Shown: piece after piece, positions 9,338-43,402 of the stretch | Layout: every line of letters starts with the position of its first letter | Numbering within the stretch: position 1 is the stretch's first letter | From: Macrostomum lignano | Taxonomy: Eukaryota | Assembly: GCA_002269645.1 (NCBI GenBank) | Contig: NIVC01002030.1 | Location: 223,389 to 287,388, forward strand | DNA length: 64,000 nucleotides | Direction: 5' to 3' | Program-made: the position numbers and the translations under genes | The notes under the pieces: model-generated | Told to the model about the DNA's origin: nothing | The model's database searches: none | The model's input: the letters and a program-made list of their open reading frames with translations, nothing else

Positions 9338-10061
9338 TATTGCTTTGTTTATTATTAATCTGAAGTAACTAAATAAGAACTAAAACTATCGGGGAAGTGA
9401 ATTCTAAATTGTAAAATCAAACAAGGGCCACCACTACACAACTGCCACACCGGGGGAGACGCGAGGCAAACGCGAGTGAATTAATTGTAAGTGCAAGATT
9501 TCCGATATTTAAGGCTTCTTGTGGACCCTTCAGTCCGGGTCCTTTTTTTAACGAAATGGAGGGTGGGTTGCATCGCTTGCCTCCCCACACACTTTTCGGG
9601 GGGAAGGTTGTTTTGCAGTTTGGCTTGGACCAAGGGGTAAAAAGAGTAAAGCGAAGGAGTGAGGCCTGCCAGACTGAATTGAGGAGGGGCCAACCAATAA
9701 GGGGCCTGCCAACCCCCTCTTCACCCGCCACCCGCCCGTGGCCAAACAGCTGATTTTTACAACCGATAGCTTTGGTTGGTTGAAACAGCCAATGTACAAT
9801 TTGACTAAACAACACGCTCCCCGCGTACATAGGCGCCCTTTACCCGATACAGACTAAATAGACTACGATTATAATACTAATTTAAGGCACAAGTGTAATA
9901 TAATCAGCTGTGTGTCTGCGTTGTTTGCTGCACGACTCGACTCAGTCAGCTTATCTTTAATTTGAATTATATGATGCATATTAGCGGACTATTTGCCGAC
10001 GGTTTACGAATTACTCTGCGTACACACTTATTAATGATAACAGGGGCGTTGCCATGGATTT

Positions 10062-10695
10062 TTGGCGCCGCAGACACTCATTTTAGCGACGCAGGCACTC
10101 ATTTTAGCGCCGCAGACACTCATTTTAGCGCCGCAGGCACTCATTTTAGCGCCGCAGACACTCATTTTAGCGCCGCAAGCACTCATTTTAGCGCCGCAGA
10201 CACTCATTTTAGCGCCGCAGGCACTCATTTTAGCTCCGCAGGCACTCATTTTAGCGCCACAGGCACTCATTTTAGCGCCGCAGACACTCATTTTAGCGCC
10301 ACAGGCACTCATTTTAGCGCCGCAGGCACTCATTAAGCGCCGCAAGCACTCATTTAAGCGCCGCAGGCACTCATTTTAGCGCCGCAGGCACTCATTTTAG
10401 CGCCGCAGGCACTCATTTTGGCGCCGCAGACACTCATTTTAGCGCCGCAGGCACTCATTTTAGCGCCGCAAGCACTCATTTTAGCGCCGCAAGCACTCAT
10501 TTTAGCGCCGCAGGCACTCATTTTGGCGCCGCAGGCACTCATTTTAGCGCCGCAAGCACTCATTTTAGCGCCGCAGACACTCATTTTAGCGCCGCAGGCA
10601 CTCATTTTAGCGCCGCAGACACTCATTTTAGCGCCGCAGGCACTCATTTTGGCGCCGCAGGCACTCATTTTAGCGCCGCAGGCACTCATTTTAGC
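10062..10695. repeat. 21-bp minisatellite cactcattttagcgccgcagg (about 30 copies)
   Basis: 7-aa periodic spurious ORFs (APQALIL); some units read ttttggcgcc. Confidence 0.97.
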
Positions 10696-11469
10696 AGAGT
10701 GACAGAGCTACACGAAGCCGAAGGCGCCTGGATTTTGTCACTTTTTTGGCCCCGGATCGCCCCCCCCCACAGCGTCGAATTGAGAACGAAGCGAACACCA
10801 TCTGCAACCCAAAGCGTTTTTTTGACACCTCGATCTCTCCATTCTTCCTAGCCCAAAAACTAAACACCAGGCCTGTCCCCAATTGACAGATCGCTCCACT
10901 TTCAACCCGAAACCGAAAAAGTTGGTGACAAAGCTTCGATGCTAATGCACCCCTCGCTGTGTTTTCTTTACTCCTCGCTCGAAGCCTTCATTCAAGATTC
11001 GAGTCAACACAATCGACTCTCTCTCAACATAGACCCAGACCAAGCCAACCGTGCTTATTCGAATTACGTTTTATATAGATCGTATTATGCGAACGTATTA
11101 GGCTCATATCAAGCATCGAATCGTGCAGTCTTATAGGAATCTACGATATCATTACCACGCAATCTGACAGAGCAGTTCGACGCTTGGATGCGTGGGGTCA
11201 GGTTGCATTGGGCCTTGGGCAGAGGATCAATCGCAAATTATTATCGAGTATAATTTTCGCATTTACTTTGTTCAGTTCTTAGAGTCTATTTTGCTAAATA
11301 ATCTAACCAGTAGTCAAGTTGAGTCAAAAAGCAATCGAACTCAACAAAATTCTTTTTTTTGTATTTATTTTGGTAAAAAAAAAATTTCCTAGCTAGCTAG
11401 TAAACGGACAAATAAGTTGATAAATTAAAAGGCATTCGATTAGGAAATTAGGAAAAGAAAAATATTTGG

Positions 11470-12005
11470 ACATTGGGAGAGAGAGATGGGAGAGAAATGG
11501 AGGGGAGGGATGGGAGAGACATGGGAGAGAGATGGGAGAGAGATGGGAGAGAGATGGTAGAGAGATGGTAGAGAGATGGGAGAGAGATGGGAGAGAGATG
11601 GTAGAGAGATGGGAGAGAGATGGGAGAGAGATGGTAGAGAGATGGGAGAGAGATGGTAGAGAGATGGGAGAGAGATGGTAGAGAGATGGGAGAGAGATGG
11701 GAGAGAGATGGGGAGAGAAAGATGGGAGAGAGATGGGAGAGAGATGGTAGAGAGATGGGAGAGAGATGGTAGAGAGATGGTAGAGAGATGATAGAGAGAT
11801 GGTAGAGAGATGGTAGAGAGATGGGAGAGAGATGGTAGAGAGATGGTAGAGAGATGGTAGAGAGATGGGAGAGAGATGGTAGAGAGATGGTAGAGAGATG
11901 GGAGAGAGATGGGAGAGATGGGGAGAGAAAGATGGGAGAGAGATGGTAGACAGATGGTAGAGAGATGGTAGAGAGATGGGAGAGAGATGGGAGAGAGATG
12001 GAGAG
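11470..12005. repeat. 11-bp GA-rich minisatellite gagagatgg(g/t)a
   Basis: Tandem copies visible directly. Confidence 0.95.
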
Positions 12006-12559
12006 ACAGTTGGGAAGAGTTAGAGCAGTTGGCACAGTGATTTCGTCAGTTAATCAAAGGACAGGTTTCGAATTTCAGAATCGCCCCCAGTTCCTCTGAA
12101 ACGCCGTCCCGCATGGCCCGCTCCGATTCAGAGCCATCGCTCGCTATACCCCGCTTTCCATCTGTCTCGTTTCGTTACCTCTTTTCAAGCCGAAAGGGCT
12201 TATAATATATACATCTAGAATCCCAACAGCCCCAAGGCCCACATCAATCTAAATCTAAATTATTTCTCCTCTCTGGCTCTGATCGTAAAAGCAGGGGGCA
12301 ACGGAGATTGCGATAGTTGGGTTGGATTCAGTTCTTCTTCACTGGGGCTGAAGAGGGCCGGGGCCCGAGGAAGTGAAGCACGTAGCACAACTCCCGAAAA
12401 CCCCTTGGCGATGACGTCAGGCGATATTTTCGTTAAGACCAGGGACTTCCATAGAATATGGCACTTGTGGACTGGAAGCTGGTATAAAATGACTATTTAT
12501 TTTATTGACAGAACTCCTATATCTGCAGCTTTGATGCCAGAACCAATGAAGGACACTTT

Positions 12560-13072
12560 GTGGGGGCGCCATCGTGGGGGTGCCATCGTGGGGGCGCCAT
12601 CGTAGGGGGCGCTATTATAGGGGCGCCATCGTATTCGTAGGGGGCGCCATCGTGGGGGCGCTATCATAGGGGGCGCCATCGTAGGGGGCGCTATCATAGG
12701 GGCGCTATCATAGGGGCGCTATCATAGGGGCGCTATCATAGGGGCGCTATCATAGGGGGCGCCATCGTAGGGGGCGCCATCGTAGGGGGCACTATCATAG
12801 GGGGCGCCATCGTAGGGGCGCTATCATAGGGGGCGCCATCGTAGGGGCGAAATCGTGGGGGCGCAATCGTAGGGGGGCCAGCCATGTAGGGGGCGTGGAA
12901 TCAGCGCCATCATGGGATCGTGGGGGGGCGCCAGTAGCAAGGCCTGGGGGCGCCAGTAGCAAGGCCTGGGGGGCGCCAGTAGCAAGGCCTGGGGGGCGCC
13001 AGTAGCAAGGCCTGGGGGGCGCCAGTAGCAAGGCCTGGGGGGCGCCAGTAGCAAGGTCTGGGGGGCGCCATC
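12560..13072. repeat. Composite G-rich array: 14-15-bp gggggcgccatcgta, then about 23-bp ggggggcgccagtagcaaggcct
   Basis: Two adjacent unit types share a G-run plus GCGCC/GCGCT core. Confidence 0.92.
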
Positions 13073-13734
13073 GCTGCCGCTGCTAAGCTGTAAAACGGTA
13101 ACAGAACGGTAAAATGACGTTTAAAACTGTTTTAGTAAGCCTCCAAGCTCCCAGTCCAGTCCATCGTTGCGAGTTTCAGAAGTCCTTGGCAAGGGGCACC
13201 CCTCTCCCTTCTGTCAACGCTTTGCCTATGTAAATAAATGAATGGTCGGGACGGTCCGCCCCTCGAGGCCCCTCTCGAGTCGAAAATATGAGTCACAGAC
13301 CCCCAACTCCGAACAAAGCGCACAGGCAGACAGAGGGAGGGCTTTCGGGAAAATTCTCCCAAAAATAAAGCTTTACACTTATACACTCACTAATGCCTAT
13401 TAGACATTACAGTATTATGCAGTGTTTATTAACGATTGTCCATTGACAATGTGGGTGCGCGGTATCCCATTGTGCTGGGGAAATGTGCGAATTCATAGAC
13501 TATATTATACGTATTATATTATCAATATAGACTTGAAAATGGTCCCTTATTTAATGCCATTGAGCGGGGTGTAACTTTTAGGCTCCGTAAGCTGGGGAAG
13601 GTCAACAAATTTTAGGAGGTGAAATTTTGATGTGTTGATTGCGAAATGTGCATAGGTGGCCTCACCTTGCTATTGGCGATATTGGCAATTTATTATTCAA
13701 AGAGTGACAAAGCCCGTGTGGAATAGCTTATGTC

Positions 13735-16700
13735 ATACACTCATTTTGGCGCCTAGAGACTCATTTTGGCGCCTAGCCAACTATTTTGGCGCCTAGACAA
13801 CCATTTTGGCTTACAAATAACCATTTTGGCGCCTAGACAATCGTTTTGGCGCCTAGACAACCATTTTGGCGACTAGACAATCATTTTGGCGACTAGACAA
13901 TCATTTTGGCGTCTAGAAAATCATTTTGGCGCCTAGACAATCATTTTAGTTTCTAGAAAACCATTTTGGCTTACAAATAACCATTTTGGCGCCTAGAAAA
14001 TCGTTTTGGCGCCTAGACAACCATTTTGGCGACTAGACAATCATTTTGGCGACTAGAAAATCATTTTGGCGTCTAGAAAATCATTTTGGCGCCTAGACAA
14101 TCATTTTGGTTTCTAGAAAACCATTTTGGTGCCTAGACAACCATTTTGGCGCCTAGGCAACCATTTTGGCGTCTAGAAAATCATTTTGGCGTCTAGAAAA
14201 CCATTTTGGCGCCTAGGCAACCATTTTGGCGTCTAGAAAATCATTTTGGCGACTAGACAATCATTTTGGCGTCTAGAAAATCATTTTGGCGCCTAGACAA
14301 TCATTTTGGTTTCTAGAAAACCATTTTGGTGCCTAGACAACCATTTTTGCGCCTAGGCAACCATTTTGGCGTCTAGAAAACCATTTTGGCGTCTAGAAAA
14401 CCATTTTGGCGCCTAGGCAACCATTTTGGCGTCTAGAAAATCATTTTGGCGACTAGACAATCATTTTGGCGTCTAGAAAACCATTTTGGCGCCTAGGCAA
14501 CCATTTTGGCGTCTAGAAAATCATTTTGGCGACTAGACAATCATTTTGGCGTCTAGAAAATCATTTTGGCGCCTAGACAATCATTTTGGTTTCTAGAAAA
14601 CCATTTTGGTGCCTAGACAACCATTTTGGCGCCTAGGCAACCATTTTGGCGTCTAGAAAACCATTTTGGTATCTAGAACACCATTTTGGCGCCTAGGCAA
14701 CCATTTTGGCTCACAAATAACCATTTTGGCGCCTAGAAAATCGTTTTGGCGCCTAGACAATCATTTTGGCGCCTAGACAACCATTTTGGCGCCTAGACAA
14801 TCATTTTGGCGCCTAGAAAATCATTTTAGTTTCTAGAAAACCATTTTGGCTCACAAATAACCATTTTGGCGCCTAGAAAATCGTTTTGGCGCCTAGACAA
14901 CCATTTTGGCGACTAGACAATCATTTTGGCGACTAGACAATCATTTTGGTTTCTAGAAAACCATTTTGGTGCCTAGACAACCATTTTGGCGCCTAGGCAA
15001 CCATTTTGGCGTCTAGAAAACCATTTTGGCGCCTAGGCAACCATTTTGGCGTCTAGAAAATCATTTTGGCGACTAGACAATCATTTTGGCGTCTAGAAAA
15101 TCATTTTGGCGCTTAGACAATCATTTTGGTTTCTAGAAAACCATTTTGGTGCCTAGACAACCATTTTGGCGCCTAGGCAACCATTTTGGCGTCTAGAAAA
15201 CCATTTTGGCGTCTAGAAAACCATTTTGGCGCCTAGGCAACCATTTTGGCGTCTAGAAAATCATTTTGGCGACTAGACAATTATTTTGGCGTCTAGAAAA
15301 CCATTTTGGCGCCCAGAAAATCGTTTTGGCGCCTAGACAACCATTTTGGCGACTAGACAATCATTTTGGCGACTAGACAATCATTTTGGCGTCTAGAAAA
15401 TCATTTTGGCGCCTAGACAATCATTTTGGTTTCTAGAAAACCATTTTGGTGCCTAGACAACCATTTTGGCGCCTAGGCAACCATTTTGGCGTCTAGAAAA
15501 CCATTTTGGCGCCTAGGCAACCATTTTGGCGACTAGACAATCATTTTGGCGCTTAGACAATCATTTTGGCGTCTAGAAAATCATTTTGGCGACTAGACAA
15601 TCATTTTGGCGTCTAGAAAACCATTTTGGCGCCTAGGCAACCATTTTGGCGTCTAGAAAATCATTTTGGCGCTTAGACAATCATTTTGGTTTCTAGAAAA
15701 CCATTTTGGTGCCTAGACAACCATTTTGGCGCCTAGGCAACCATTTTGGCGTCTAGAAAACCATTTTGGCGCTTAGACAATCATTTTGGTTTCTAGAAAA
15801 CCATTTTGGTGCCTAGACAACCATTTTGGCGCCTAGGCAACCATTTTGGCGTCTAGAAAACCATTTTGGCGTCTAGAAAACCATTTTGGCGCCTAGGCAA
15901 CCATTTTGGCGTCTAGAAAATCATTTTGGCGACTAGACAATCATTTTGGCGTCTAGAAAACCATTTTGGCGTCTAGAACACCATTTTGGCGCCTAGGCAA
16001 CCATTTTGGCTCACAAATAACCATTTTGGCGCCTAGAAAATCGTTTTGGCGCCTAGACAATCATTTTGGCGCCTAGACAACCATTTTGGCGCCTAGACAA
16101 TCATTTTGGCGCCTAGAAAATCATTTTAGTTTCTAGAAAACCATTTTGGCTCACAAATAACCATTTTGGCGCCTAGAAAATCGTTTTGGCGCCTAGACAA
16201 CCATTTTGGCGACTAGACAATCATTTTGGCGACTAGACAATCATTTTGGCGTCTAGAAAATCATTTTGGCGCCTAGACAATCATTTTGGTTTCTAGAAAA
16301 CCATTTTGGTGCCTAGACAACCATTTTGGCGCCTAGGCAACCATTTTGGCGTCTAGAAAACCATTTTGGCGCCTAGGCAACCATTTTGGCGTCTAGAAAA
16401 TCATTTTGGCGACTAGACAATCATTTTGGCGTCTAGAAAATCATTTTGGCGACTAGAAAATCATTTTGGCGTCTAGAAAATCATTTTGGCGCCTAGACAA
16501 TCATTTTGGTTTCTAGAAAACCATTTTGGTGCCTAGACAACCATTTTGGCGCCTAGGCAACCATTTTGGCGTCTAGAAAATCATTTTGGCGTCTAGAAAA
16601 CCATTTTGGCGCCTAGGCAACCATTTTGGCGTCTAGAAAATCATTTTGGCGACTAGACAATCATTTTGGCGTCTAGAAAATCATTTTGGCGCCTAGACAA

Positions 16701-19700
16701 TCATTTTGGTTTCTAGAAAACCATTTTGGTGCCTAGACAACCATTTTGGCGCCTAGGCAACCATTTTGGCGTCTAGAAAACCATTTTGGCGTCTAGAAAA
16801 CCATTTTGGCGCCTAGGCAACCATTTTGGCGTCTAGAAAATCATTTTGGCGACTAGACAATCATTTTGGCGTCTAGAAAACCATTTTGGCGCCTAGGCAA
16901 CCATTTTGGCGTCTAGAAAATCATTTTGGCGACTAGACAATCATTTTGGCGTCTAGAAAATCATTTTGGCGCCTAGACAATCATTTTGGTTTCTAGAAAA
17001 CCATTTTGGTGCCTAGACAACCATTTTGGCGCCTAGGCAACCATTTTGGCGTCTAGAAAACCATTTTGGCATCTAGAACACCATTTTGGCGCCTAGGCAA
17101 CCATTTTGGCTCACAAATAACCATTTTGGCGCCTAGAAAATCGTTTTGGCGCCTAGACAATCATTTTGGCGCCTAGACAACCATTTTGGCGCCTAGACAA
17201 TCATTTTGGCGCCTAGAAAATCATTTTAGTTTCTAGAAAACCATTTTGGCTCACAAATAACCATTTTGGCGCCTAGAAAATCGTTTTGGCGCCTAGACAA
17301 CCATTTTGGCGACTAGACAATCATTTTGGCGACTAGACAATCATTTTGGTTTCTAGAAAACCATTTTGGTGCCTAGACAACCATTTTGGCGCCTAGGCAA
17401 CCATTTTGGCGTCTAGAAAACCATTTTGGCGCCTAGGCAACCATTTTGGCGTCTAGAAAATCATTTTGGCGACTAGACAATCATTTTGGCGTCTAGAAAA
17501 TCATTTTGGCGCTTAGACAATCATTTTGGTTTCTAGAAAACCATTTTGGTGCCTAGACAACCATTTTGGCGCCTAGGCAACCATTTTGGCGTCTAGAAAA
17601 CCATTTTGGCGTCTAGAAAACCATTTTGGCGCCTAGGCAACCATTTTGGCGTCTAGAAAATCATTTTGGCGACTAGACAATTATTTTGGCGTCTAGAAAA
17701 CCATTTTGGCGCCCAGAAAATCGTTTTGGCGCCTAGACAACCATTTTGGCGACTAGACAATCATTTTGGCGACTAGACAATCATTTTGGCGTCTAGAAAA
17801 TCATTTTGGCGCCTAGACAATCATTTTGGTTTCTAGAAAACCATTTTGGTGCCTAGACAACCATTTTGGCGCCTAGGCAACCATTTTGGCGTCTAGAAAA
17901 CCATTTTGGCGCCTAGGCAACCATTTTGGCGTCTAGAAAATCATTTTGGCGACTAGACAATCATTTTGGCGTCTAGAAAATCATTTTGGCGCTTAGACAA
18001 TCATTTTGGCGTCTAGAAAATCATTTTGGCGACTAGACAATCATTTTGGCGTCTAGAAAACCATTTTGGCGCCTAGGCAACCATTTTGGCGTCTAGAAAA
18101 TCATTTCGGCGCTTAGACAATCATTTTGGTTTCTAGAAAACCATTTTGGTGCCTAGACAACCATTTTGGCGCCTAGGCAACCATTTTGGCGTCTAGAAAA
18201 CCATTTTGGCGCTTAGACAATCATTTTGGTTTCTAGAAAACCATTTTGGTGCCTAGACAACCATTTTGGCGCCTAGGCAACCATTTTGGCGTCTAGAAAA
18301 CCATTTTGGCGTCTAGAAAACCATTTTGGCGCCTAGGCAACCATTTTGGCGTCTAGAAAATCATTTTGGCGACTAGACAATCATTTTGGCGTCTAGAAAA
18401 CCATTTTGGCGTCTAGAACACCATTTTGGCGCCTAGGCAACCATTTTGGCTCACAAATAACCATTTTGGCGCCTAGAAAATCGTTTTGGCGCCTAGACAA
18501 TCATTTTGGCGCCTAGACAACCATTTTGGCGCCTAGACAATCATTTTGGCGCCTAGAAAATCATTTTAGTTTCTAGAAAACCATTTTGGCTCACAAATAA
18601 CCATTTTGGCGCCTAGAAAATCGTTTTGGCGCCTAGACAACCATTTTGGCGACTAGACAATCATTTTGGCGACTAGACAATCATTTTGGCGTCTAGAAAA
18701 TCATTTTGGCGCCTAGACAATCATTTTGGTTTCTAGAAAACCATTTTGGTGCCTAGACAACCATTTTGGCGCCTAGGCAACCATTTTGGCGTCTAGAAAA
18801 CCATTTTGGCGCCTAGGCAACCATTTTGGCGTCTAGAAAATCATTTTGGCGACTAGACAATCATTTTGGCGTCTAGAAAATCATTTTGGCGCTTAGACAA
18901 TCATTTTGGTTTCTAGAAAACCATTTTGGTGCCTAGACAACCATTTTGGCGCCTAGGCAACCATTTTGGCGTCTAGGAAACCATTTTGGCGTCTAGAAAA
19001 CCATTTTGGCGCCTAGGCAACCATTTTGGCGTCTAGAAAATCATTTTGGCGACTAGACAATTATTTTGGCGTCTAGAAAACCATTTTGGCGCCTAGAAAA
19101 TCGTTTTGGCGCCTAGACAACCATTTTGGCGACTAGACAATCATTTTGGCGACTAAACAATCATTTTGGCGTCTAGAAAATCATTTTGGCGCCTAGACAA
19201 TCATTTTGGTTTCTAGAAAACCATTTTGGTGCCTAGACAACCATTTTGGCGCCTAGGCAACCATTTTGGCGTCTAGAAAACCATTTTGGCGCCTAGGCAA
19301 CCATTTTGGCGTCTAGAAAATCATTTTGGCGACTAGACAATCATTTTGGCGTCTAGAAAATCATTTTGGCGCTTAGACAATCATTTTGGCGTCTAGAAAA
19401 TCATTTTGGCGACTAGACAATCATTTTGGCGTCTAGAAAACCATTTTGGCGCCTAGGCAACCATTTTGGCGTCTAGAAAATCATTTTGGCGCTTAGACAA
19501 TCATTTTGGTTTCTAGAAAACCATTTTGGTGCCTAGACAACCATTTTGGCGCCTAGGCAACCATTTTGGCGTCTAGAAAACCATTTTGGCGTCTAGAAAA
19601 CCATTTTGGCGCCTAGGCAACCATTTTGGCGTCTAGAAAATCATTTTGGCGACTAGACAATCATTTTGGCGTCTAGAAAACCATTTTGGCGCCTAGGCAA

Positions 19701-20101
19701 CCATTTTGGCGTCTAGAAAATCATTTTGGCGACTAGACAATCATTTTGGCGTCTAGAAAATCATTTTGGCGCCTAGACAATCATTTTGGTTTCTAGAAAA
19801 CCATTTTGGTGCCTAGACAACCATTTTGGCGCCTAGAAAATCATTTTGGCGCCTATAGCTCGTACAACTATTTTGGCGTCTACACAACCATTTTGGCTCC
19901 CAGATATCCATTTTGGCGCCTAGACACTGATTTTGGCGCCTAGACACTGATTTTGGCGCCTAGACACTGATTTTGGCGCCTAGACACTGATTTTGGCGCC
20001 TAGACACTGATTTTGGCGCCTAGACACTGATTTTGGCGCCTAGACACTGATTTTGGTGCCTAGACACTGATTTTGGCGCCTAGACACTGATTTTGGCGCC
20101 T
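13735..20101. repeat. 20-bp satellite (c/t)cattttggcg(c/t/a)ctag(a/g)(c/a)aa with higher-order structure
   Basis: 306 units in unbroken 20-bp register from 13741 to 19860. Rare variants recur 2400 bp apart. A homogeneous tail (cactgattttggcgcctaga) runs about 19905-20101. Confidence 0.99.
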
Positions 20102-20539
20102 AATACATGGGCCGTCAGGATCTAGATTTCTACCTGGTAAAGTTCGCTTAGGTTTACCAGCCCCTGATTACAACTTACGTTCCAAACCAAGTGGTCTTGG
20201 CGATAACGATCCCAAAACAACAATTTTCGAATTCAGAATTTCAACTTTATTCAAGCGTATTAAATAATATAGAAATTGGGTGACGAAATAAAATATAGCA
20301 ACGACAATTGCAGAACCAACCATCACCTAATTATCAAAGTGCCAAACGCAGGTGTGCAGGGGGTCACCCCATGCATTTAAAGTTCCTCAGAGATTAATAA
20401 ATAGTAAATATAAAATACGTATGGGTGGTATCGAATGTTTGTTACTGAGACGAACTCAGATGAGTCACTGCTTGCACATTTGAATTGTGAAATTTTACCT
20501 TGCAGGTAAGGTAAACTTGGCAGTAAGGCCCGCGCTGGG

Positions 20540-20870
20540 TTCTGTCTCTTCTAAGATCTCTTGTTTCATCTCATCTCCTCTTTCATCTCCTCTCATCGCT
20601 ATCATCTATTCTCAGCCTTTCTATATTCTTATCTTCTCTCTTATTCAAACTCTCATCCCATCTCTCTTCCCATCTCATTTGACATCTCATCTGATTTCTA
20701 ATTTTATCTTTCATCTCTCTCTCCTCTTCTCAATCTTCTCAATCTTCTATCTTACATCTTCTCTCACTCATCTCATCTCATCTTTTCTCCCTCCCCTCTC
20801 CTCTCACTTTTCTCTCTTCTCTCCCCTCTCCCTTCTCTGCATCTCTTCCCTCATCTCTCATTTCCTCTCA
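20540..20870. repeat. CT-rich low-complexity tract
   Basis: Repeated tcatctctc-like words. Confidence 0.7.
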
Positions 20871-20909
20871 ATTTGCTTGCAGCCATAAGTTGAATTTTTT
20901 ATCTGGCCT

Positions 20910-21680
20910 CTTAAGCGCCACAGTAAAAGATTTAAGCGCCACAAACAAAGATTTAAGCGCCACAAACAAAGATTTAAGCGCCACAAACAAAGATTTAAGC
21001 GCCACAAACAAAGATTTAAGCGCCACAATCAAAGATTTACGCGCCACAATCAAAGATTTAAGCGCCACAAACAAAGATTTAAGCGCCACAAACAAAGATT
21101 TAAGCGCCACAATCAAAGATTTAAGCGCCACAAACAAAGATTTAAGCGCCACAAACAAAGATTTAAGCGCCACAAACAAAGATTTAAGCGCCACAAACAA
21201 AGATTTAAGCGCCACAATCAAAGATTTACGCGCCACAATCAAAGATTTAAGCGCCACAAACAAAGATTTAAGCGCCACAAACAAAGATTTAAGCGCCACA
21301 AACAAAGATTTAAGCGCCACAATCAAAGATTTAAGCGCCATAATCAAAGATTTAAGCACCACAATCAAAGATTTAAGCGCCACAATCAAAATTTAAGCGC
21401 CCCAAATTCAAAGATTTAAGCACCACAATCAAAGATTTAAGCGCCACAATCAAAGATTTAAGCGCCATAATCAAAGATTTAAGCACCACAATCAAAGATT
21501 TAAGCGCCACAATCAAAATTTAAGCGCCCCAAATTCAAAGATTTAAGCGCCACAATCAAAATTTAAGCGCCACAATCAAAATTTAAGCGCCCCAAATTCA
21601 AAGATTTAAGCGCCACAATCAAAGATTTAAGCGCCACAATCAAAATTTAAGCGCCACAAACAGAGATTTAAGCGCCACAG
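20910..21680. repeat. 21-bp minisatellite aaagatttaagcgccacaa(a/t)c
   Basis: 7-aa periodic spurious ORF (KDLSATN). Confidence 0.97.
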
Positions 21681-22019
21681 CCACAATTTCCCTATCATTC
21701 CCACGGATGAAGTTTTACTTCATCCAGTTAGTTACCGAGTGGCAAGCTGGGGCCATTGAATTGGAAACGAAGGCATGATTTCGGGCAGAATTTCGGGCAA
21801 AATTTATTAATTGATGAGGGAGGAATGAAGGGATTGTAAAATATGGTTGGCTACATTGTATTTGTGCCCGACACTTTAACCATGGTAAAATGCATTTCCA
21901 CATCTGTAGAATCACTTCCCGCTTACCTTTAGACTAAATAATCAATCTGGTTAACTTTGATCTGGTCTTCTGTTGTTGCGTGGAATCTTTTGAACAGATC
22001 AGGGAGAGATGAAAGGCTG

Positions 22020-22880
22020 GAAGAGTAAACCTATGATGAAAGTGAAGAGAGGATAAAGAGATGAAGGGAGAGGACAGAGAGATGAAGGGAGAAGACAGGC
22101 ATCGTTACCTCCAGGAGAAAATTCGCAGTGAGGAAAGCCCTTTCTGCCTCTCCGGTGTCGAGAATGCGGAGCACTTCATCTGTGAATGCCCCGCCTTGAC
22201 TCAGGTCAGGCTCACCTACCTCGGCCCAAACCCGGACCTCTCCGACGTTTTCAGGCCCGAGAATCTCTGCCAGCTCGTCCGCTACCTAAGGGCTACCGGG
22301 CGAGCGACAATCCACCTCCTGGACTCTCCGGAGGGGGACCGCGCTGCGGACGCCGGCGCCACCGGAACTCCCTGCGCGACACCGCAGCACCAGCTGCCCG
22401 TGGTCGCCAGGGGTTAGCGAAATGGGCGGCAACGCCTCCTCGCTGTTTCCGGACGCACGGAGCCCCCTGCAGCTAAGTCAAGTAAGTCAAGTGAAGGGAG
22501 AAAAGAGGACAGAGAGATGAAGGGAGATGAGAGACAGAGAGATGAAGGGAGATGAGAGAACAGAGAGATGAAGGGAGATGAGAGAACAGAGAGATGAAGG
22601 GAGATGAGAGGGTGGAGAGATGAATGGTGAGAAGAGGACAGAGAGATGAAGGGAGATGAGAGACAGAGAGATGAAGGGAGATGAGAGAACAGAGAGATGA
22701 AGGGAGATGAGAGAACAGATAGATGAAGGGAGATGAGAGGGTGGAGAGATGAATGGTGAGAAGAGGACAGAGAGATGAAGGAGATGATAGGACAGAGAGA
22801 TGAAGGGAGAGAAGAGGACAGAGAGATGAAGGGAGAGGAGAGGACAGGAAGGGAAGAAGGAAAAGACAGAGTAGAGAGAT
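22020..22880. repeat. GA-rich degenerate array (gagagatgaaggga...) interrupted by a LINE fragment
   Basis: Same words at 22020-22097 and 22493-22880. Confidence 0.85.
22098..22492 (+). mobile_element. 5'-truncated 3' end of a non-LTR retrotransposon (LINE; R1/LOA/I-like C-terminal Zn knuckle)
   Basis: Translation [16 protein letters not shown]...[22 protein letters not shown]...[10 protein letters not shown] resembles the ORF2 C-terminal CCHC region (one Cys lost). Ends in a short tandem tail, taagtcaagtaagtcaagt. Confidence 0.75.
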
Positions 22881-23739
22881 GAAGGGATCGAGGTGATAAT
22901 ATTCTGCAGCAGTGACAACATAGAACTCTCTGATATGTTAGAATTTGCATGCATTACATATATACACAAAAGTTTACTGGACTTAACAAGCATTTCCCAG
23001 AAAGGCAGACAGTGCACTTAAGAAAGCGCCTTAGCGACTGGGATGAAGAAGTGGAGATACAAAAATACAGCACACCAGCTGCCTGTCAAACATCAAAGAT
23101 GCCAATTGCCTAGTAACTATTAGAAAGCCTAGATAGTATATATAATTACCAAGACAGGCAAAAGGGCGGTATACATTATAAGCCTCTTTAAGCCCCAAAA
23201 ACTTCCTTGGACCAGCTCATGATCCAGATGACATTTTAGACATCATAGCAACTAACAATGATACTTATTTCCAAGTTTTATGATGAAATCAATCCAGGTT
23301 TGCGGTAGGATTGGTGTAATTTAGTTACTATGCCAGTTCTTAACCCATAATCGTGCATTGTCTTTTCAAATGATGGTTAAAGCAACAGTGATATCAGACG
23401 AAACCCCAAATTGGTTGTTATTTTTGAATGCATTTATATTTATAGCGTGATTTCTAATATTTATTTGATACCTTATAAACTAGCTCATAAATTCACAATA
23501 AACTCACTCACAATCTTAAACTCCTCAATCAAAAAATAGCTCATTTGACTGCGTCACTTCGACAAAAATTAGTCACAAAATTTTTACTGTAAGTCACAAC
23601 TGCATTTACCTACTCAATAGTAGCGTTGTTTGCTGATTATAAGCCATAGAATACCAGAATATTCCTCCGTAATATTGCTGCAATAGCCAGAGAGCAATTT
23701 ATCAAAACTCTCGACTCACTGAGAGTTGTCGAGACTCTC

Positions 23740-24110
23740 TTGCTTACTGAGTCTCTTGGCGCCTCACTGACTCTTTGGCGCCTCACTAACTCCTTTGGCG
23801 CCTCATCAACACTCTTGGTGCCTGACTGACTCCCTTCGCGCCTCACTGACTCTCTTGGCGCTTCACTGACTCTTTTGGCGCCTCACTGACTATCTTAGCG
23901 CCTCACTGACTGACTCTCTTGGCGCCTTACTGACTCTCTTGGCGCCTTACTGACTCTCTTGGCGCCTTACTGACTCTCTTGGCGCCTTACTGACTCTCCT
24001 GGCGCCTTACTGACTCTCTTGGCGCCTTACTGACTCTCTTGGCGCCTCACTGACTTCCTTGGCGCCTCACTGACTCTTTTGGCGCCTCACTGACTCACCT
24101 GGCACCTGAA
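23740..24110. repeat. 20-bp minisatellite ggcgcct(t/c)actgactctctt
   Basis: Tandem copies with a ttggcgcc core. Confidence 0.93.
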
Positions 24111-24762
24111 CGTGATAAAAAATACTGTTGCTATTGAGACTTTCACAACTGAATTTAACCTTATTTGTTCCCTGAACTTACCAGACCAAATTAACAAAGT
24201 ATTCTGGCAAACTATTGTTCCTCATTAGAAATCTAGACTAAATGACTAATTGATAGATTAAATAAATAAGCAAATCACGGACTGATTACTGCTTTAATAG
24301 CTGACAATACAGTTCCTCTAGAGTATGACAGGTCTGCGCTTCTGTTTGTCTCAAAGTCTATATTTATAGTTTTAAAAACCAAACAACAGGTTGGCACTGC
24401 AGTTAATGATGCGTTACAGCTTATTAAACTGAGTAGGGGAAAAGTAAATGTAAAATAAGGTGTTGTTTTTTAGCTCGCGCGAGTTGCCAAGCGGGTGGGG
24501 AAAATAATTAGATGGAAAGTTTTGCTTGTTCGTGTGGCACACAGGTAAGCATGCAGGTGTGTTAATATTAGTTACAGGTATTAGTCCCGTGTTAGTAACT
24601 CACAAACACGGCTCCCACAGCAGGGCAGAAGGTTGCCAGAACTCAAGCAAACCTTACTAATAATGAAAAGGCCGAAAATGAATCAGAAAGGAATTATGAA
24701 TAAAAGAAAAATTTCCCAACAAAAAAGCTCCGCTGGTTTCTGTCTTTTTTTATAAAAAAGGA

Positions 24763-25244
24763 TTAAAGTTCTCGAACAGCAGCGAAGCTGGCTCCCTGCT
24801 GCTGCGGCTGCTGAGGTGGAGGCTGAGGCTGCGATGAAGCGGATACTGCCTGCTGTTGTGCCGAAGCTCCCTGCTGAGTCTGCTTGCCGCTGTCCCGCCT
24901 ATCAAAGTCTCCAGCTGCGGCCTGACTTAGCCAGCTGGCATAAGCTGAGCTGCTATCGTCCTGCCCGGCAACAATAAATGCAGATGATGATGAGGACTGA
25001 GCCTGATGATGATGATGATGCTGAGACTGCGGCTGCTGAGGAGACTGGCCGCCGCCTCCACCACCGCCACCGCCGCCGCCGATTGGCTGAAGGTAGGCCG
25101 CAGGAGGCGGCGGCGGTGGTGGCGGCGGAGGCGGAGGCGGCAGCGGCGGAGGTGGCGCCAGACTGGGCCAGGCGACCAGCGCCTGCGGCAGCCATGGCGG
25201 CTGTTGGGTGCCCCAGGGCGCGGTGCAGAAACCGCCGTCCAGCA

Positions 25245-25291
<47 letters not shown>

Positions 25292-25547
25292 CCAGGATAA
25301 TAGGCCAAAGTGCAGACTCCGGCTCCCTGACCGGCGCTAGGATCGCACGGCATAGCCGGTTGCCAAGCAGTTGCCGGGTAGGCGATATGAGCCGGCATTG
25401 GCGGCAGCTGCTGCTGCTGCTGCTGCTGCTGCTGAGGATGCAGCAGATGGTGCAACGGCGGCAGAGACGGTTGAAGGGGCGGCGGCGGCGGTGGCGGCAG
25501 CAGCTGGTGCGGCTGCATCAAGTGATAGGGCTGCGCAGCTTGGTAGA

Positions 25548-25578
<31 letters not shown>

Positions 25579-26911
25579 GTACTGAGAGGTGGCCGCTGCA
25601 GCCGCTGCAGCAGCCGCCGCAGCGGCCGACGCTTGGCCTCGAGCGGCAGCAGCGGCGGTGTCGAAGTTTGGCGGCTTCATGGCTTTGACTTCGACTAGTC
25701 GGCCACAGATGTCGACGTAGTGCAGCTGCACCAGCCGGGCTACCACGCGCTCGTCGTCGAAGGCGACAAAGGCGAAGCCGCGGTGCCGTTGCTTGGTCTG
25801 GTCCAGCATGAGGTTGACGTCCGTCACCCGGCCGAACTGGGAGAAACAGGCGCGCACCTGCGGGTAGGTCAGTTTTAACTGGCTTATTAACAGGCAAGCA
25901 CCAGGGGCGCCAGCACCAGGGGCGCCAGCACCAGGGGCGCCAGCACCAGGGGCGCCAGCACCAGGGGCGCCAGCACCAGGGGCGCCAGCACCAGGGGCGC
26001 CAGCACCAGGGGCGCCAGCACCAGGGGCGCCAGCACCAGGGGCGCCAGCACCAGGGGCGCCAGCACCAGGGGCGCCAGCACCAGGGGCGCCAGCACCAGG
26101 GGCGCCAGCACCAGGGGCGCCAGCACCAGGGGCGCCAGCACCAGGGGCGCCAGCACCAGGGGCGCCAGCACCAGGGGCGCCAGCACCAGGGGCGCCAGCA
26201 CCAGGGGCGCCAGCACCAGGGGCGCCAGCACCAGGGGCGCCAGCACCAGGGGCGCCAGCACCAGGGGCGCCAGCACCAGGGGCGCCAGCACCAGGGGCGC
26301 CAGCACCAGGGGCGCCAGCACCAGGGGCGCCAGCACCAGGGGCGCCAGCACCAGGGGCGCCAGCACCAGGGGCGCCAGCACCAGGGGCGCCAGCACCCCT
26401 CTGCAATCGGGGGAGTCTACGACCCATGTGACAGTGATTTCGCAGAAAATTTGAGTTTGAATGCGCGCCCTACCGTAGCGGAGTCGTGCTCCGGAGCGAT
26501 GCCGCCGACAAAGATCTTAAGACTGCGGCTGCTCTTTCCTTTGACGTTGATGTTGCTCTGCTTCACGTCCACGGCCTTGCCGTCGATCACGTGATCGCTG
26601 GTCTCCAGCACGGCGTCCACTACGGCGGGGTCGCGGAATTTCACAAAGCCGAAACCGCGCGACCGACCAGTCTGGCTGTCCATCATCACCACGGCGTCCT
26701 CCACCTGGCCGTACATGCCGAAGTGGCAGCGCAGGCTGGTCTCGTTAGTCAGCTGACTGAGCCCGCCGATGAAGAGCTTGCCGAACTCGTTTCCAGCCGT
26801 GTCCGTGGCTCCGGCCACCGGCAGGCAGTGCAGCTGCTGACTGGCCGCGCCCGTCGGGTCCTTGTTGCCGCTGCCGCAGCTGTCGTCGTCGCCGTCGACA
26901 GAGGCTAGCAT
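24763..26911 (-). CDS. Two-RRM RNA-binding protein, DAZAP1/Hrp48/Musashi family, 2 exons, about 510 aa
   Basis: Exon 1 26911-26474 (ACG|GTAGGG): RRM1 GKLFIGGL...RSRGFGFVKF, and RRM2 start KIFVGGI. Exon 2 25857-24763 (cccgcag|GTG): KQRHRGFAFVAF...HYVDICGRLVEVK, then a Q/P/A-rich tail. Closest to DAZAP1 by my recollection of the family; orthology not established. Confidence 0.9.
25898..26397. repeat. Perfect 15-bp intronic array gcaccaggggcgcca (about 33 copies)
   Basis: No variant unit seen; lies in the RRM-gene intron. Confidence 0.98.
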
Positions 26912-27399
26912 GTCGCTATTTTTTTCAGATGAAGAACAAGAGTCTGAAAGCCTGCGGAGTTCTTGCAGCGGCAGGAGAGACTCCAGCCGACAGTCAGGGA
27001 GCAGGAGGGGGCAGGGGAATCCTTATAACTGCTAAATCTGCTGCTTCTGCTGCACTTCTCACTTTGTAGCTGGGGTGCTGGCGGGCCACAGAGCTGCAGC
27101 GCTGGATCTGACGCTTTCCCGTGTTGGCAACAGAATCCGAGCCAATACAGAAAGAAAAGTCGAGAGAAGCACCGCGGTTTGTGCCATAGAGGATGAATTT
27201 ATTTGTTTTCTAGTGCGCCAGAATTCCACGACTCAGCTGGCTGCCCGAAAAGCCGCCAAACACGCATGCAGGCGGTACTGCGGCAAAAGTACACGCGGCA
27301 TTCTAGTGTCACTGCCGTGGCATCTCGTAACTGATATCGTATTGCAATAAACTGAGAATCTCATGCCTAGACTGGGGATCTCAATGATATTTTTACTGA

Positions 27400-27880
27400 C
27401 AATCTCATGCCTTAAACCGACAATCTGCCATTAAACTTACTCCAGTCCTTAAACCGACAATCTCAATCCTTGGACCGATAATCTCAATCTTTGAACCGAT
27501 AATCTCAGTCCTTGGACCGATAATATCAAATCTTAAACCGACAATCTCATTCCTTAAACCGACAATCTCTATTCTTAAACCGACAATCCCATTCCTTAAA
27601 CCGACAATCCCATTCCTTAAACCGACAATCTCAATCCTTAAACCGACAATCTCAATCCTTAAACCGACAATTTCAATCATTAAACCGACAATTTCAATCT
27701 TATAACCAACAATCTGTCCTTAAACCGACAATCTCAATCCTTGGACCGACAATCTCAGTCCTTAAACCGACAATCCCAGTCCTTAAATCGACAATCCCAG
27801 TCCTTTAACCGACAATCTCAATCCTGAAACCGACAATCTCATTTCTTAAAAAAGACAATCTCATTCCTTTAACCGAAAAC
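27400..27880. repeat. 21-bp minisatellite ttaaaccgacaatctcaatcc
   Basis: 7-aa periodic spurious ORF (IEIVGLR). Confidence 0.93.
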
Positions 27881-28254
27881 GTCATACCAGAAGCGTATAA
27901 ACTAGCATAACCTTTAATTGTCATTAATTTGTACAACTTTTTTCAAAATAAGCAAGCCAATTAATGCGCAAAGTTCAAGATTTATTGCAATCGCAGCCGA
28001 CTTTTTGAACAGAAATCTGTTGCACAACATGACTCGAACCAATGACCGCAACCTTGCGCAAAGTCAACTGTCTGTCGTAAATTTTATTTTCATTTGAATA
28101 AACATAGAATCTTAATCGGGCTCCAGTAAGCAATGAATGACTGTTCAATGCGTTTGTAGGGCTACTTATTGGGAACAAGCAAGCACGCACAAGACGGATC
28201 TACTATTGAAATTGGGCACCTGAGCATGCGAACACCAATCAGTAAATCTTCACA

Positions 28255-29125
28255 CCCGAATGAGTCCGGGATCTTTACATCAAAGTCCCGAAAAAATCCG
28301 GGATTTTCTCCTGAAAGTCCCGAATAAATCCCGGATCTTCAGGTCAAAGTCCCGAATAAGTCCGGGTTTTTCACATCAAAGTCCCGAATGAGTCCGGGTT
28401 TTTCACATCAAAGTCCCGAATGAGTCCGGGTTTTTCACATCAAAGTCCCGAATGAGTCCGGGTTTTTCACATCAAAGTCCCGAATGAGTCCGGGTTTTTC
28501 ACATCAAAGTCCCGAATGAGTCCGGGTTTTTCACATCAAAGTCCCGAATGAGTCTGGGATCTTCACATCAAAGTCCCGAATGAGTCCGGGTTTTTCACAT
28601 CAAAGTCCCGAATGAGTCTGGGATCTTCACATCAAAGTCCCGAATGAGTCCGGGTTTTTCACATCAAAGTCCGAATGAGTTCGGGTTTTTCACATCAAAG
28701 TCCCGAATGAGTCCGGGTTTTTCACATCAAAGTCCCGAATGAGTCTGGGATCTTCACATCAAAGTCCCGAATGAGTCCGGGTTTTTCACATCAAAGTCCC
28801 GAATGAGTCCGGGTTTTTCACATCAAAGTCCCGAATGAGTTTGGGATCTTCACATCAAAGTCCCGAATGAGTTTGGGATCTTCACATCAAAGTCCCGAAT
28901 GAGTCCGGGTTTTTCACATCAAAGTCCCGAATGAGTCCGGGTTTTTCACATCAAAGTCCCGAATGAGTCCGGGTTTTTCACATCAAAGTCCCGAATGAGT
29001 CCGGGTTTTTCACATCAAAGTCCCGAATGAGTCCGGGTTTTTCACATCAAAGTCCCGAATTAGTCCGGGGTTTTCACATCAAAGTCCCGAATTAGTCCGG
29101 GGTTTTCACATCAAAGTCCCGAATG
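28255..29125. repeat. 32-bp minisatellite cacatcaaagtcccgaatgagtccgggttttt
   Basis: Tandem copies visible directly. Confidence 0.97.
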
Positions 29126-29293
29126 TTTACACGAAAATCCTATTTAAAGAATACAGAGTTCAGTCAACGAGTGCCCTAAGTTAAAATGAAACAGAAAAGC
29201 ACAAAAAACTCGCAACAAGCCTACTATCAGTAGGCGCAGTACATTCGACAGAAAAAAAGATTAAAAAAAAATCAAAAATTAATTTTTCTAGAA

Positions 29294-29770
29294 TCATCGC
29301 TTCTTTTTTTGCTTCTTCTTCTCCTGGGATGATTGGCCGCCGCCGCCTCCGCCGGAAGCTCCTCCACCTCCACCGGAAGCGCCGCCACCGCCGCCGGAAG
29401 CACCCTGGCGAGTTTTCAATTTCGGTATCTGAGCGGCCACGTAGTTAAACACGGCCATTCGATTAGGAAAATTGTCCGGATGCCGCAACGAGCCGTCCTC
29501 ATTTTTCAGCTGGATTCGAACCCGGCCGCGCAGATTCTTGTCATAGATGTCGCGCTCTCTAGGGTGGATTTTGTTCTCAACGCCCAGGGTCATGCCGGCG
29601 GCGGCGCACACGTCACGAATCTCCTCGGCGCGAGGATTGTCGACAGCCAGGCTGTAGGACACTTTGCGGCCGCGAGCTCGCGACCACGCCCTGTTGATGT
29701 AGCAGGGGTAGAAGCAGATCCACTTCTCCCGGTCAGCGTGGGAGAATTCCGGGTTGAATGGGCGAGCCAT
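29294..29770 (-). CDS. SRP19: Signal recognition particle 19 kDa protein
   Basis: Single-exon 158-aa ORF: WICFYPCYIN...GRKV...AVDNPRAEEIRDVC...ENKIHPRE...RGRVRIQLKNEDG, then a Gly-rich linker and C-terminal KKKQKKKR. Confidence 0.96.
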   Translation of the reverse strand: MARPFNPEFSHADREKWICFYPCYINRAWSRARGRKVSYSLAVDNPRAEEIRDVCAAAGMTLGVENKIHPRERDIYDKNLRGRVRIQLKNEDGSLRHPDNFPNRMAVFNYVAAQIPKLKTRQGASGGGGGASGGGGGASGGGGGGQSSQEKKKQKKKR

Positions 29771-29819
29771 GCAGCAGAATTATGAGATTTGGGAGATTAA
29801 TTACATGCTTAACCTGCGA

Positions 29820-30310
29820 CTGTGTACCTGTGTACACCCCAATATCGATTAGATATCTACCTGTGTACACCCCAATATTGATTAGATATCTACCTGTGTA
29901 CACCCCAATATTGATTAGATATCTACCTGTGTACACCCCAATATTGATTAGATATCTACCTGTGTACACCCCAATATCGATTAGATATGATCCACCTGTG
30001 TACACCCCAGTATCGATTAGATTTCTACTTGTGCACACTCCAATATTGATTAGATATCTACCTGTGTACACCCCAATATCGATTAGATATGATCCACCTG
30101 TGTACACCCCAGTATCGATTAGATTTCTACTTGTGCACACTCCAATATTGATTAGATATCTACCTGTGGACACCCCAGTATCGATTAGATATCTACTTGT
30201 GCACACTCCAATATTGATTAGATATCTACCTGTGTACACCCCAATATAAATTAGATATCATCTACTTGTGTACACCCCAATATCAGTTAGATATCTACCT
30301 TTGTGCACCT
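29820..30310. repeat. 33-bp minisatellite acctgtgtacaccccaatattgattagatatct
   Basis: 11-aa periodic spurious ORFs. Confidence 0.95.
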
Positions 30311-30884
30311 CAACATTAATTATAAACTATATTGCACTAATGTAATAAAGTGCAGACACGTCAAGTTGAAATGAAACGCATAAGAAGCCTTTTAAAAGAA
30401 CTTCAAAACAATTTATTTAAACTTCAAATGAAATATTGTAAAGAGAAATTATTAAAAAAACAATTAGGAAAACAAAGAAAAATCTACATAATTGGATAAA
30501 AGTACAACAGGTTAAAAATTCGCATATATCCAGTAAATATACATGGAATATAAAATACCTGGGTGAGATTTTAAAATTTTAAATAAGTAACAAAACAATA
30601 AAAACAGTGCGAAATAACAAAGGAATCTTTGCAACAGTCACCAGAGTCATAAATGTATTTATATTTATACATGTATACTGAAGACGTATATTTATTATAC
30701 GAGTACGTAATTGCACAAAGATGAATAGAGAATGAATGAACAAGATAGCATACGGTGTGTAACAATATACTACTGACAGGAAACTTTTGTACAGTAGCTG
30801 ATAACAGATATGACAACAAATTAATTTTGATATACATTTCCTTAATACACATAAAATTGTGGCCTCTGTTGGGCATTGACGCGC

Positions 30885-31250
30885 CAAAAGACAAAATGAG
30901 GCGTCAAAGGAGGCAGTAATGCGCCAAGGGATGAAATGAGGCGCCAAGGGGGCCAATGAGGCGCCAAATGATGAAGTGAGGCGTCAAGTGAGGCAATGAG
31001 GCAACAAGGGGGAGCAGTGAGACGCCAAGAGGCAGTGTTGTGCCAAGGGGGGCAATGAGGCGCCGAAGGATGAAATGAGGCGCCAGGGGGGCAATGAGGC
31101 GCCGAAGGATGAAATAAGACGCCAAAAGGGGGGCAGTGAGGCGCCGAAGGATGAAGTGAGACGCCAAAAGGGGGGCAATGAGGCGCTGAAGGATGAAATG
31201 AAACGCCAAGGGGGGCAGTGAGACGCCAAGAGGCAGTGAGGCGCCAAGTT
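30885..31250. repeat. Degenerate gaggcgcc(a/g)a-containing array
   Basis: Recurring aatgaggcgcc/gtgagacgcc words. Confidence 0.8.
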
Positions 31251-31331
31251 AGGCAAGAATAGATTAACTAGACACCACAATTGAAGCCCAACAAGCCAGT
31301 CAAGCCGTGACGGCATCGCCAATTTCAGCAG

Positions 31332-42981: not shown

Positions 42982-43402
42982 GGATCCTAGTCATTTCGTC
43001 AACTGCCATTTCGTCAACTGGACACATCGTCAACCCGTTCCCCATATTGGTCGTTTCGTCAACCAACCAATAGGATACTTTCAAAGCTTGGTTATTTCGT
43101 CAACTGTTCAATGGGACGATGTCAACTTTTGGTCACTTCGTCAACTGCCAATAATACACGCCCCGCATGCAGCCCTCCTCCTTTCTCATTCTGTGCTTGG
43201 GACCAGACAATGGCGGAGTTACTGCCACAAAGATGCAGTTTGTATGGTAAAAAAAGGAAAATGCATTGCACAAAATCACAAAGATCACAAAGGCCACCAC
43301 AAAGGTCACAATCAAATATAAAGCTGAAGATATGCGCAGAGTGTACAGTACACTTATCCACTTCTACACTGTATACACTAATACCTATATACACTTTAGG
43401 TA

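Follow-up and report, generated by a model that had tools for sequence, protein, structure and literature searches.

Why should a cell-cycle gene be preceded by a series of long tandem arrays that have differing units and one short GC-rich motif in common? The question is raised by a stretch of 64,000 nucleotides of the Macrostomum lignano genome (the window), whose source is contig NIVC01002030.1 of assembly GCA_002269645.1; locus L005 from this contig is 100% identical to window 1-19337. The gene is cdc25, recognised from an open reading frame of 375 aa (8210-9337, minus strand) that is 98% identical to M. lignano BOX15_Mlig005390g3, an M-phase inducer phosphatase. The window copy (Mlig005390g1, 7556..9337, minus strand) has a 5' exon with its ATG at 9337 and a catalytic exon at 7556-7990, and since it lies on the minus strand all positions above 9337 are upstream of it, where an earlier reading of this DNA, the original prediction, had correctly placed the arrays. 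That prediction proposed that the arrays, united by the core (G/A)GCGCC, are polymerised E2F-like sites forming an enhancer or sponge for cdc25, or else a transposon-derived minisatellite that merely contains the motif. The analysis reported here leads us to regard the arrays as probably a dispersed, core-sharing family of non-coding minisatellites, of the sort that fills intergenic and intronic DNA in M. lignano, and not as elements kept for the regulation of cdc25. The arrays grow and shrink several-fold, and the repeats of the family are probably neutral.

Core-bearing arrays and their kinship

Tandem Repeats Finder (TRF) identifies 31 distinct arrays of at least 100 bp in the window, nine of which carry [GA]GCGCC on either strand. 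Every array named in the original prediction was recovered, although the block at 12560 resolves into two arrays (12560-12880 and 12923-13070), so that the seven claimed become eight in 10060-31256. Nor is the core confined to 10-31 kb as had been stated, as the last entry below makes clear. The core-bearing arrays, with their TRF coordinates and units, are as follows.

10060..10695, plus strand: 30 units of 21 bp, CACTCATTTTAGCGCCGCAGG (TRF consensus TTTTAGCGCCGCAGGCACTCA), starting 723 bp upstream of the cdc25 ATG
12560..12880, minus strand: 22 units of 14/15 bp, GGGGGCGCCATCGT(A), listed as GGGGGCGCCATC..., G-rich subfamily (GGGGCGCCA)
12923..13070, minus strand: 6.5 units of 23 bp, GGGGGGCGCCAGTAGCAAGGCCT
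13742..20102, plus strand: 318 units of 20 bp, CATTTTGGCGCCTAGACAAC
20911..21679, plus strand: 37 units of 21 bp, TTAAGCGCCACAATCAAAGAT, with the A variant of the core
23746..24107, plus strand: 18 units of 20 bp, CTCTTGGCGCCTCACTGACT (TRF consensus ACTGACTCTCTTGGCGCCTC), forming an inverted pair with the 30881 array
25897..26397, minus strand: 33 units of 15 bp, reading AGCACCAGGGGCGCC on the plus strand
30881..31256, minus strand: degenerate array of 20/40-bp units, reverse complement CCTCCCTTGGCGCCTCATT, inverted counterpart of the 23746 array
44959-45281, outside the region: array with a 101-bp unit that includes GGCGCT, a ninth and marginal core-bearing array

Sharing of the core on this scale is far from what base composition would produce. 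Composition-preserving shuffles of the units gave a mean of 0.65 core-bearing arrays and a maximum of 5 in 5000 shuffles, and core-bearing arrays make up 8 of the 13 inside 10-31.3 kb against 1 of the 18 outside (Fisher p=0.0012). When all k-mers were scanned, GGCGCCA emerged as the most widely shared 7-mer of array units, present in six arrays, and any 7-mer as widely shared arose in only 2 of 1000 shuffles. In unique DNA of the window CpG is undepleted (observed/expected 0.83), and GGCGCC occurs 16 times where 8 are expected, with no arrays around such sites; the pattern is explained neither by decay through methylation nor by a general excess of the motif in the genome.

Beyond the core, related arrays share longer blocks, and alignment of the units anchored on the core separates them into subfamilies. 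The 10060 unit reads (A/G)GCGCC-GCAGGC-ACTCATTTT and the 13742 unit GGCGCC-TAGACAA(C/T)CATTTT, and CATTTTRGCGCC is common to the two arrays. The 13742 array opens with cactcattttggcgcc, as the original prediction had quoted, and its first units still read ACTCATTTTGGCGCC; tttaagcgcc is likewise confirmed in both the 10060 and the 20911 arrays. The sequence TTGGCGCCT is common to the 13742, 23746 and 30881 arrays, the 12-mer CTTGGCGCCTCA to the 23746 and 30881 arrays, and GGGGCGCCA(G) to those at 12560, 12923 and 25897, while the 12923 array, which lies 43 bp from its neighbour at 12560, also shares GGGGGCGCCA with it. Unrelated pairs of arrays typically have only 4-6 nt in common. The 23746 and 30881 arrays are mutually inverted, with arms of 135 nt that are 73% complementary and with the RRM and SRP19 genes between them. 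The proposal of one locally spreading family thus stands as regards local kinship, which the shared blocks of 9-16 nt and the inverted pair bear out, and falls short in that the family is also found on other contigs.

The 13742 array holds a strict 20-bp register through all 318 units with no indel, and in the 25897 array, which lies between two RRM exons of an hnRNP-like gene and is skipped by the gene models, 33 of 33 units are 100% identical. The uniformity of the 25897 array suggests either a very recent expansion or variation that was collapsed by the assembly. If translated, the 25897 array would read GAGAP 33 times over. The G-rich subfamily (AGGGGGCGCC) carries what we take to be a likeness to half of the CTCF motif; the 5' half of that motif is absent.

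The core family is not the only one in the window. A second family, rich in GA/CT and built from blocks of the GAAGGGAGA type, comprises the arrays at 7623, 11479, 20755, 22492, 53165, 58021 and 62014, and because it shows the same kind of kinship across the window, the formation of families appears to be a general habit rather than something special to the cdc25 side. Two of its members (58021-58337 and 62014-62215), separated by 3.7 kb and set in unrelated flanks, are built from one and the same 23-bp unit, ACAGGTGAGTGAAGGGAGATTAG, in opposite orientations; from a reading of the open frames, the exons between them look like a SAPS-domain (PP6 regulatory subunit-like) gene. Another member, 22492-22887, directly follows an open frame at 22100-22420 (plus strand) that has no Pfam hit. 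Read by eye, this frame resembles the zinc-knuckle C-terminus of ORF2 of a long interspersed element (LINE), and the array may be the repeat tail of a 5'-truncated LINE.

Relatives at other loci and turnover between copies

Relatives of the arrays are met on other contigs, and two lines of evidence bear on this. The first comes from two further groups of cdc25 paralogues in M. lignano. Mlig027235 (loci L006 and L007) lies in DNA of which 39-45% is arrays, four of them core-bearing; the two upstream of the gene (ATGGCGCCACTCAGATCCCAA and AGATTGGCGCCCCTCAGATCT) do not fit the E2F consensus, and the two downstream (L006 13131 and 14937; ...GGCGCCAAATGAGTGGCAA... and GAGTGACAGAGGCGCCAAAAT) do. The reverse complement of the L006 14937 unit, CACTCATTTTGGCGCCTCTGT, agrees with the 10060 unit in 17 of its 21 nucleotides, variant units of the same array (GCTCATTTTAGCGCCTAGGTC) mix features of the 10060 and 13742 units, and the 16-mer CACTCATTTTGGCGCC is common to one array of this unlinked paralogue and the window family. 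Outside the cdc25 exons, L006 and the window have only one dispersed short repeat in common. Mlig022781 (L002 and L008) is set in gene-dense, array-poor DNA (11-16% arrays), and none of its 13 arrays has the core, nor does its 1.5-kb upstream intergenic region contain TTTSSCGC. The GA-rich family is distributed in the same manner, being present in L006 (at 3060, 4018, 8433, 15792 and 20572) and not found in the array-poor L002 locus; the presence of the core family at two cdc25 paralogues and its absence from the third tracks array density, as does that of the GA-rich family.

The same start, TTGGCGCC, and the same end, CTCATTTTRGC, are seen in the 10060 array and, once reverse-complemented, in that of L006 14937. 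Just past the end of the 10060 array (10696-10730) stands GAGTGACAGAG, an inverted piece of the L006-type unit.

The second line of evidence comes from a protein. Translated, the 10060 array gives THFSAAG repeats, and these were searched with HMMER against 1.84 billion representative proteins, with 529 hits. Among the 23 that were inspected, the sole clear relative is an M. lignano gene model for delta-aminolevulinic acid dehydratase (P0227, UniRef A0A1I8GIS5), which contains in mid-enzyme seven consecutive (T/A)HF(G/S)AAG units, the translation of the 10060 21-bp unit including its spacer. Presumably the gene predictor translated through an array that lies in an intron, and since arrays would surface in protein databases only by such accidents of gene modelling, one match implies further members. 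The other 22 inspected hits are unrelated heptad repeats, ten of which were checked further and showed no M. lignano source; the unit of P0306 (locus L009) is unrelated. A scan of metagenomes with a dimer of the 15-mer gave 0 hits.

The turnover of the arrays can be followed among four copies of the locus in the assembly: the window (g1), L003, L004, which lies at a contig end, and L001 (g3). All length comparisons are between copies from a single assembly and not between population alleles. L001 covers window 1-24083 with 94-98% identity in unique DNA and retains all eight arrays of the 10-24 kb interval, six with the core and two without, in unchanged order and with unchanged units. Their lengths have changed, as the following pairs illustrate (start of array in the window, length in the window, length in L001).

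10060: 636 bp, 1184 bp
11479: 541 bp, 349 bp
12560: 321 bp, 383 bp
13742: 6361 bp, 1106 bp
20911: 769 bp, 582 bp
22492: 396 bp, 630 bp

From the window to L001 the length of an array changes by as much as 5.8-fold, and lengths differ between L006 and L007 as well. The 10060 array measures 636 bp in L003 as well. For the 13742 array, the count is 318 units in the window, 55 in L001 and at least 279 in L003. When each unit of this array is reduced to a letter for its core variant (GGCGCC 103, GGCGTC 88, GGCGAC 42, GGTTTC 22 and GGTGCC 22 in the window), the resulting string can be read as a series of repeated blocks, each roughly 60-110 units long. L003 shows the unit-type order of the window with one block difference, and L001 has mostly units of the intact type; it follows that the growth of the window copy was largely a growth of units with a broken core.

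The copies also differ in cdc25 itself. The annotation has a full-length protein, of 487 aa, for g3 (L001) alone. Relative to it, a single C is missing from the window copy at about 1329 nt, counted from the ATG, and the product is shortened to 383 aa; in L003 and L004 (g2/g4) the missing C is at nt 767 and the product has 288 aa. These single-base deletions may reflect genuine decay among the duplicated copies or, alternatively, indel errors in the PacBio data. L004 (NIVC01000630.1) ends 46 bp past its copy of the 10060-type array, and arrays of the core family seem to break the assembly.

Regulatory, mobile-element and core-driven explanations

On a regulatory explanation, the arrays would be polymerised sites for E2F/DP, or for another factor reading ACTCATTTTGGCGCC, and would serve as a distal enhancer, silencer or sponge tuning cdc25 in dividing cells. 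The sequence TTTGGCGC does match the textbook E2F consensus TTTSSCGC, and the number of such sites had been estimated well: 132 occur on the plus strand upstream of cdc25, from 0.7 kb upstream of the ATG outward. The unlinked paralogue at L006/L007 has two GGCGCC arrays upstream and two downstream that read GGCGCCAAA(A)TGAGTG, and the promoter-side edge unit of the array nearest to cdc25 is TTTTGGCGCC, such that an array could have been seeded from a single promoter site. The fit is nonetheless restricted to a minority of the family. Only one of the eight consensus units, that of 13742, contains TTTSSCGC, and the arrays nearest cdc25, which had been described as E2F-like, mostly are not: the 10060 units are mostly TTTTAGCGCC, with no fit, the G variant TTTTGGCGCC being present in about 4 of 30 units and at the promoter-side edge, and a T run is missing from the arrays at 12560 and 12923. 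Even in the 13742 array the motif is kept by just 113 of 318 units (36%). The positions within it are among the most variable of the unit, position 11, inside GGCGCC, having the lowest information content of all (0.57 bits) and positions 9, 10 and 12 having 1.15, 1.33 and 1.43 bits, below the level usual along the unit, 1.6-1.9 bits; comparable variability is seen in the spacer, at positions 17 (0.62 bits), 20 (1.00 bits) and 16 (1.13 bits). In a set of ten arrays, seven from the window and three from L006, retention of the core hexamer is about that of the median hexamer of the unit. The conservation of sites expected of an E2F element is therefore not seen, given these variable core positions and 318 against 55 units between copies of the locus. 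As a cause of the core variability, methylation-driven decay of CpG was considered and is unlikely, with CpG at the ratio given above and main variants that are not CpG transitions.

Position and distribution also speak against a role at cdc25. Typical E2F sites are promoter-proximal, and most of those here lie 4.4-10.8 kb from the ATG. The paralogue Mlig022781 has neither arrays nor, in the upstream intergenic region examined, a consensus site, and members of the family also lie beyond SRP19, in an intron of the RRM gene and in the gene model for the dehydratase. The copies of the locus with the largest arrays have frameshifted cdc25 frames in the annotation, for which assembly error is a possible cause. 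In sum, the proposed E2F/DREAM enhancer or sponge finds no support in the tests that were run, with the consensus in 1 of 8 arrays, a variable core, a copy-number difference of about 6-fold and an arrayless paralogue, and we consider a regulatory origin of the arrays unlikely. More doubtful still is the version in which ACTCATTTTGGCGCC binds a protein, be it E2F/DP or some other factor, and cdc25 paralogues have repeatedly recruited or retained arrays as platforms tunable by copy number; were it true, expansion and contraction of an array would directly modulate a cell-cycle gene in a regenerating animal rich in stem cells.

Dispersal by transposition is the other explanation that the distribution of the family brings to mind. 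The arrays would then be repeats from the interior or the ends of a mobile element (foldback-like, Helitron-like, a miniature inverted-repeat transposable element (MITE), or the repeat tail of a LINE or short interspersed element (SINE)). Consistent with this, the family is present on at least three unlinked contigs or genes, the inverted pairs 23746/30881 and 58021/62014 (the latter with its identical 23-bp unit) recall foldback elements, the GA-rich 22492 array sits directly behind the putative LINE-like ORF2 C-terminal fragment, and the 10060 and reverse-complemented L006 14937 arrays start and end at the same unit phase. What such an element would be expected to leave beside its repeats was not found. 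Self-comparison of the array-masked window, and comparison of 300-bp flanks by 7-nt words, revealed no flanking sequence shared between related arrays; L006 and L002 compared with the array-masked window have no body or termini common to related arrays; and a search for inverted repeats around the arrays returned only the arrays themselves, with no separate terminal inverted repeats around any of them. No unique sequence is shared beside related arrays either within the window or between loci, even at the level of 7-11-nt words, though these flank comparisons are a small sample from which a very short or degenerate element body could escape. Both inverted pairs enclose host genes in intact orientation (RRM, SRP19 and the putative SAPS-domain exons) and have unrelated outer flanks. 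A common MITE or transposon vehicle was accordingly rejected on the self-, cross-locus, short-word and inverted-repeat comparisons. The common MITE with termini that the original prediction had itself named as fatal to its regulatory idea was thus not found in the array-masked and flank comparisons, and of its alternative, the transposon-derived minisatellite, the minisatellite family fits and the transposon part does not, there being no shared flanks, termini or element body. Movement as part of a mobile element seems to us rather improbable, if somewhat less so than a regulatory origin.

A further explanation makes the core itself the cause. The classical 'core' idea for minisatellites is that of a cis-acting sequence, and the palindrome GGCGCC could be a preferred site of breakage, template switching or recombination-protein binding around which arrays arise independently. 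The core is indeed the sole element common to all subfamilies, it is shared far above chance, and a palindrome permits seeding either way, both orientations of arrays being seen. However, 22 arrays of the window are coreless and 17 of these lie outside 10-31 kb, in the zone with a single, marginal core-bearing array, so the core is not needed for making arrays. Its excess in unique DNA has given rise to no arrays there, shared blocks of 12-16 nt indicate common descent and not convergence, and within arrays the core decays as fast as other positions. Independent origin around the core is about as unlikely as a regulatory origin.

The explanation that we favour as probable is descent within a dispersed minisatellite family. 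Arrays with differing units that share a core are found at multiple loci, with eight members in the window, four more in L006 and another in the dehydratase model, and copy number is highly variable. Unrelated flanks, together with the inversion of the 23746 and 30881 arrays, point to dispersal without flanking DNA. Changes in array length would be driven by replication slippage and unequal exchange, and pieces of existing arrays would seed new ones, in either orientation, nearby or on other chromosomes and with no flanking DNA, one possible route being the re-insertion of excised repeat fragments during break repair. Each new array would spread its own unit variant along its length. The GCGCC core, and in one subfamily the longer ACTCATTTTGGCGCC, would then be a remnant of the ancestral unit, inherited rather than selected, and the match of TTTGGCGC to the E2F consensus a by-product in one subfamily.

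Several points weigh against the favoured explanation. The lengths come from a PacBio assembly in which mis-assembly is possible, but the window and L003 agree in the order of unit types. Family arrays lie within 4 kb of cdc25 in two of its three paralogue groups, and among them the L006 arrays at 13131 and 14937 fit the E2F consensus. The 10060 and L006 14937 arrays agree in a 15-nt block, bar the A/G variant of the core, and differ at 3 positions of the 6-nt spacer; constancy of the block between loci with an altered spacer counts in favour of a regulatory site, and as far as sequence can tell the pattern would also fit a block bound by protein. All the genomic loci that were compared are cdc25 loci, and the dehydratase gene model alone speaks for sites elsewhere. 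Finally, the route by which arrays are seeded is one that we purely infer.

Genomic setting, known systems and significance

Arrays account for 35% of the window and for 65% of 10-24.7 kb; simple and tandem repeats together make up 15% of the M. lignano genome (PMC5730564). In 11 of the 31 window arrays the period is 20 or 21 bp, about two helical turns. Rfam and tRNA scans gave no match inside arrays. Other features of the window are listed here.

1470-2303: retroelement gag/protease fragment
24763-26911, minus strand: hnRNP-like gene with two RRM domains
29294-29770, minus strand: SRP19 (Pfam E=1.4e-24)

As a protein query the retroelement gag returned no M. lignano loci, and the RRM protein had matches only among models known from UniRef alone. 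A dispersed repeat of about 250 bp, with copies that are 88-93% identical (window 42731-42974 and 55269-55450; L006 16757-17001), contains a borderline tRNA match (Rfam, 29.1 bits, 42919-42987, minus strand) and may be a tRNA-derived SINE; near it are an open reading frame like a Mutator-like element (MULE) transposase (43403-44221) and a mariner helix-turn-helix fragment (49840-50295).

Parallels with better known repeats are instructive. Minisatellites of the Jeffreys type, such as human 33.6 and 33.15, occupy many loci with different units and have a short GC-rich core in common, and the arrays described here are similar in their units of 14-23 bp, in a GC-rich core across differing units, in a copy number that varies between copies of the locus and in their dispersal among genes. 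They differ in the core, which is the palindrome GGCGCC and not GGGCAGGANG, and in being far denser (more than a third of the window); we know of no link to recombination hot spots in M. lignano, and in contrast to the core-driven view of the Jeffreys type the evidence here favours common descent over array formation driven by the core. The euchromatic 1.688 satellites of Drosophila, with units of about 360 bp, are thought to spread via extrachromosomal circles. Like them, the Macrostomum family forms short arrays among genes, in either orientation and in unrelated flanks; unlike them, it has units of about 20 bp that diverge strongly between arrays. Foldback transposons offer a likeness in the inverted arrays of short subrepeats that flank segments of 4-7 kb (23746/30881 and 58021/62014), set against the ordinary host genes between these arrays and the lack of common termini or target-site duplications in comparisons within the window. 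With E2F-responsive promoters of the cdc25A type the locus shares the presence of TTTGGCGC upstream of a cdc25 gene. Known E2F elements consist of one or two conserved sites near the transcription start, unlike the hundreds of decaying copies found here at 0.7-12 kb and in unconstrained number, in a family most of whose arrays miss the consensus.

Core-sharing dispersed minisatellite families are already known as a phenomenon; for Macrostomum, a literature search turned up neither these arrays nor a GGCGCC core. Should the family prove to be tied genome-wide to cell-cycle genes, its copy-variable arrays would constitute a heritable dial on cdc25 expression in a regeneration model that is ready for transgenesis. 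If instead the explanation favoured here is true, the locus shows how the tandem repeats of M. lignano are organised, in families defined by a short core, with several-fold turnover from one duplicated copy to another and with new arrays seeded free of flanking DNA, and this would be of use in repeat annotation, in understanding assembly breaks such as the contig that ends at one of these arrays, and in studies of the birth of minisatellites.

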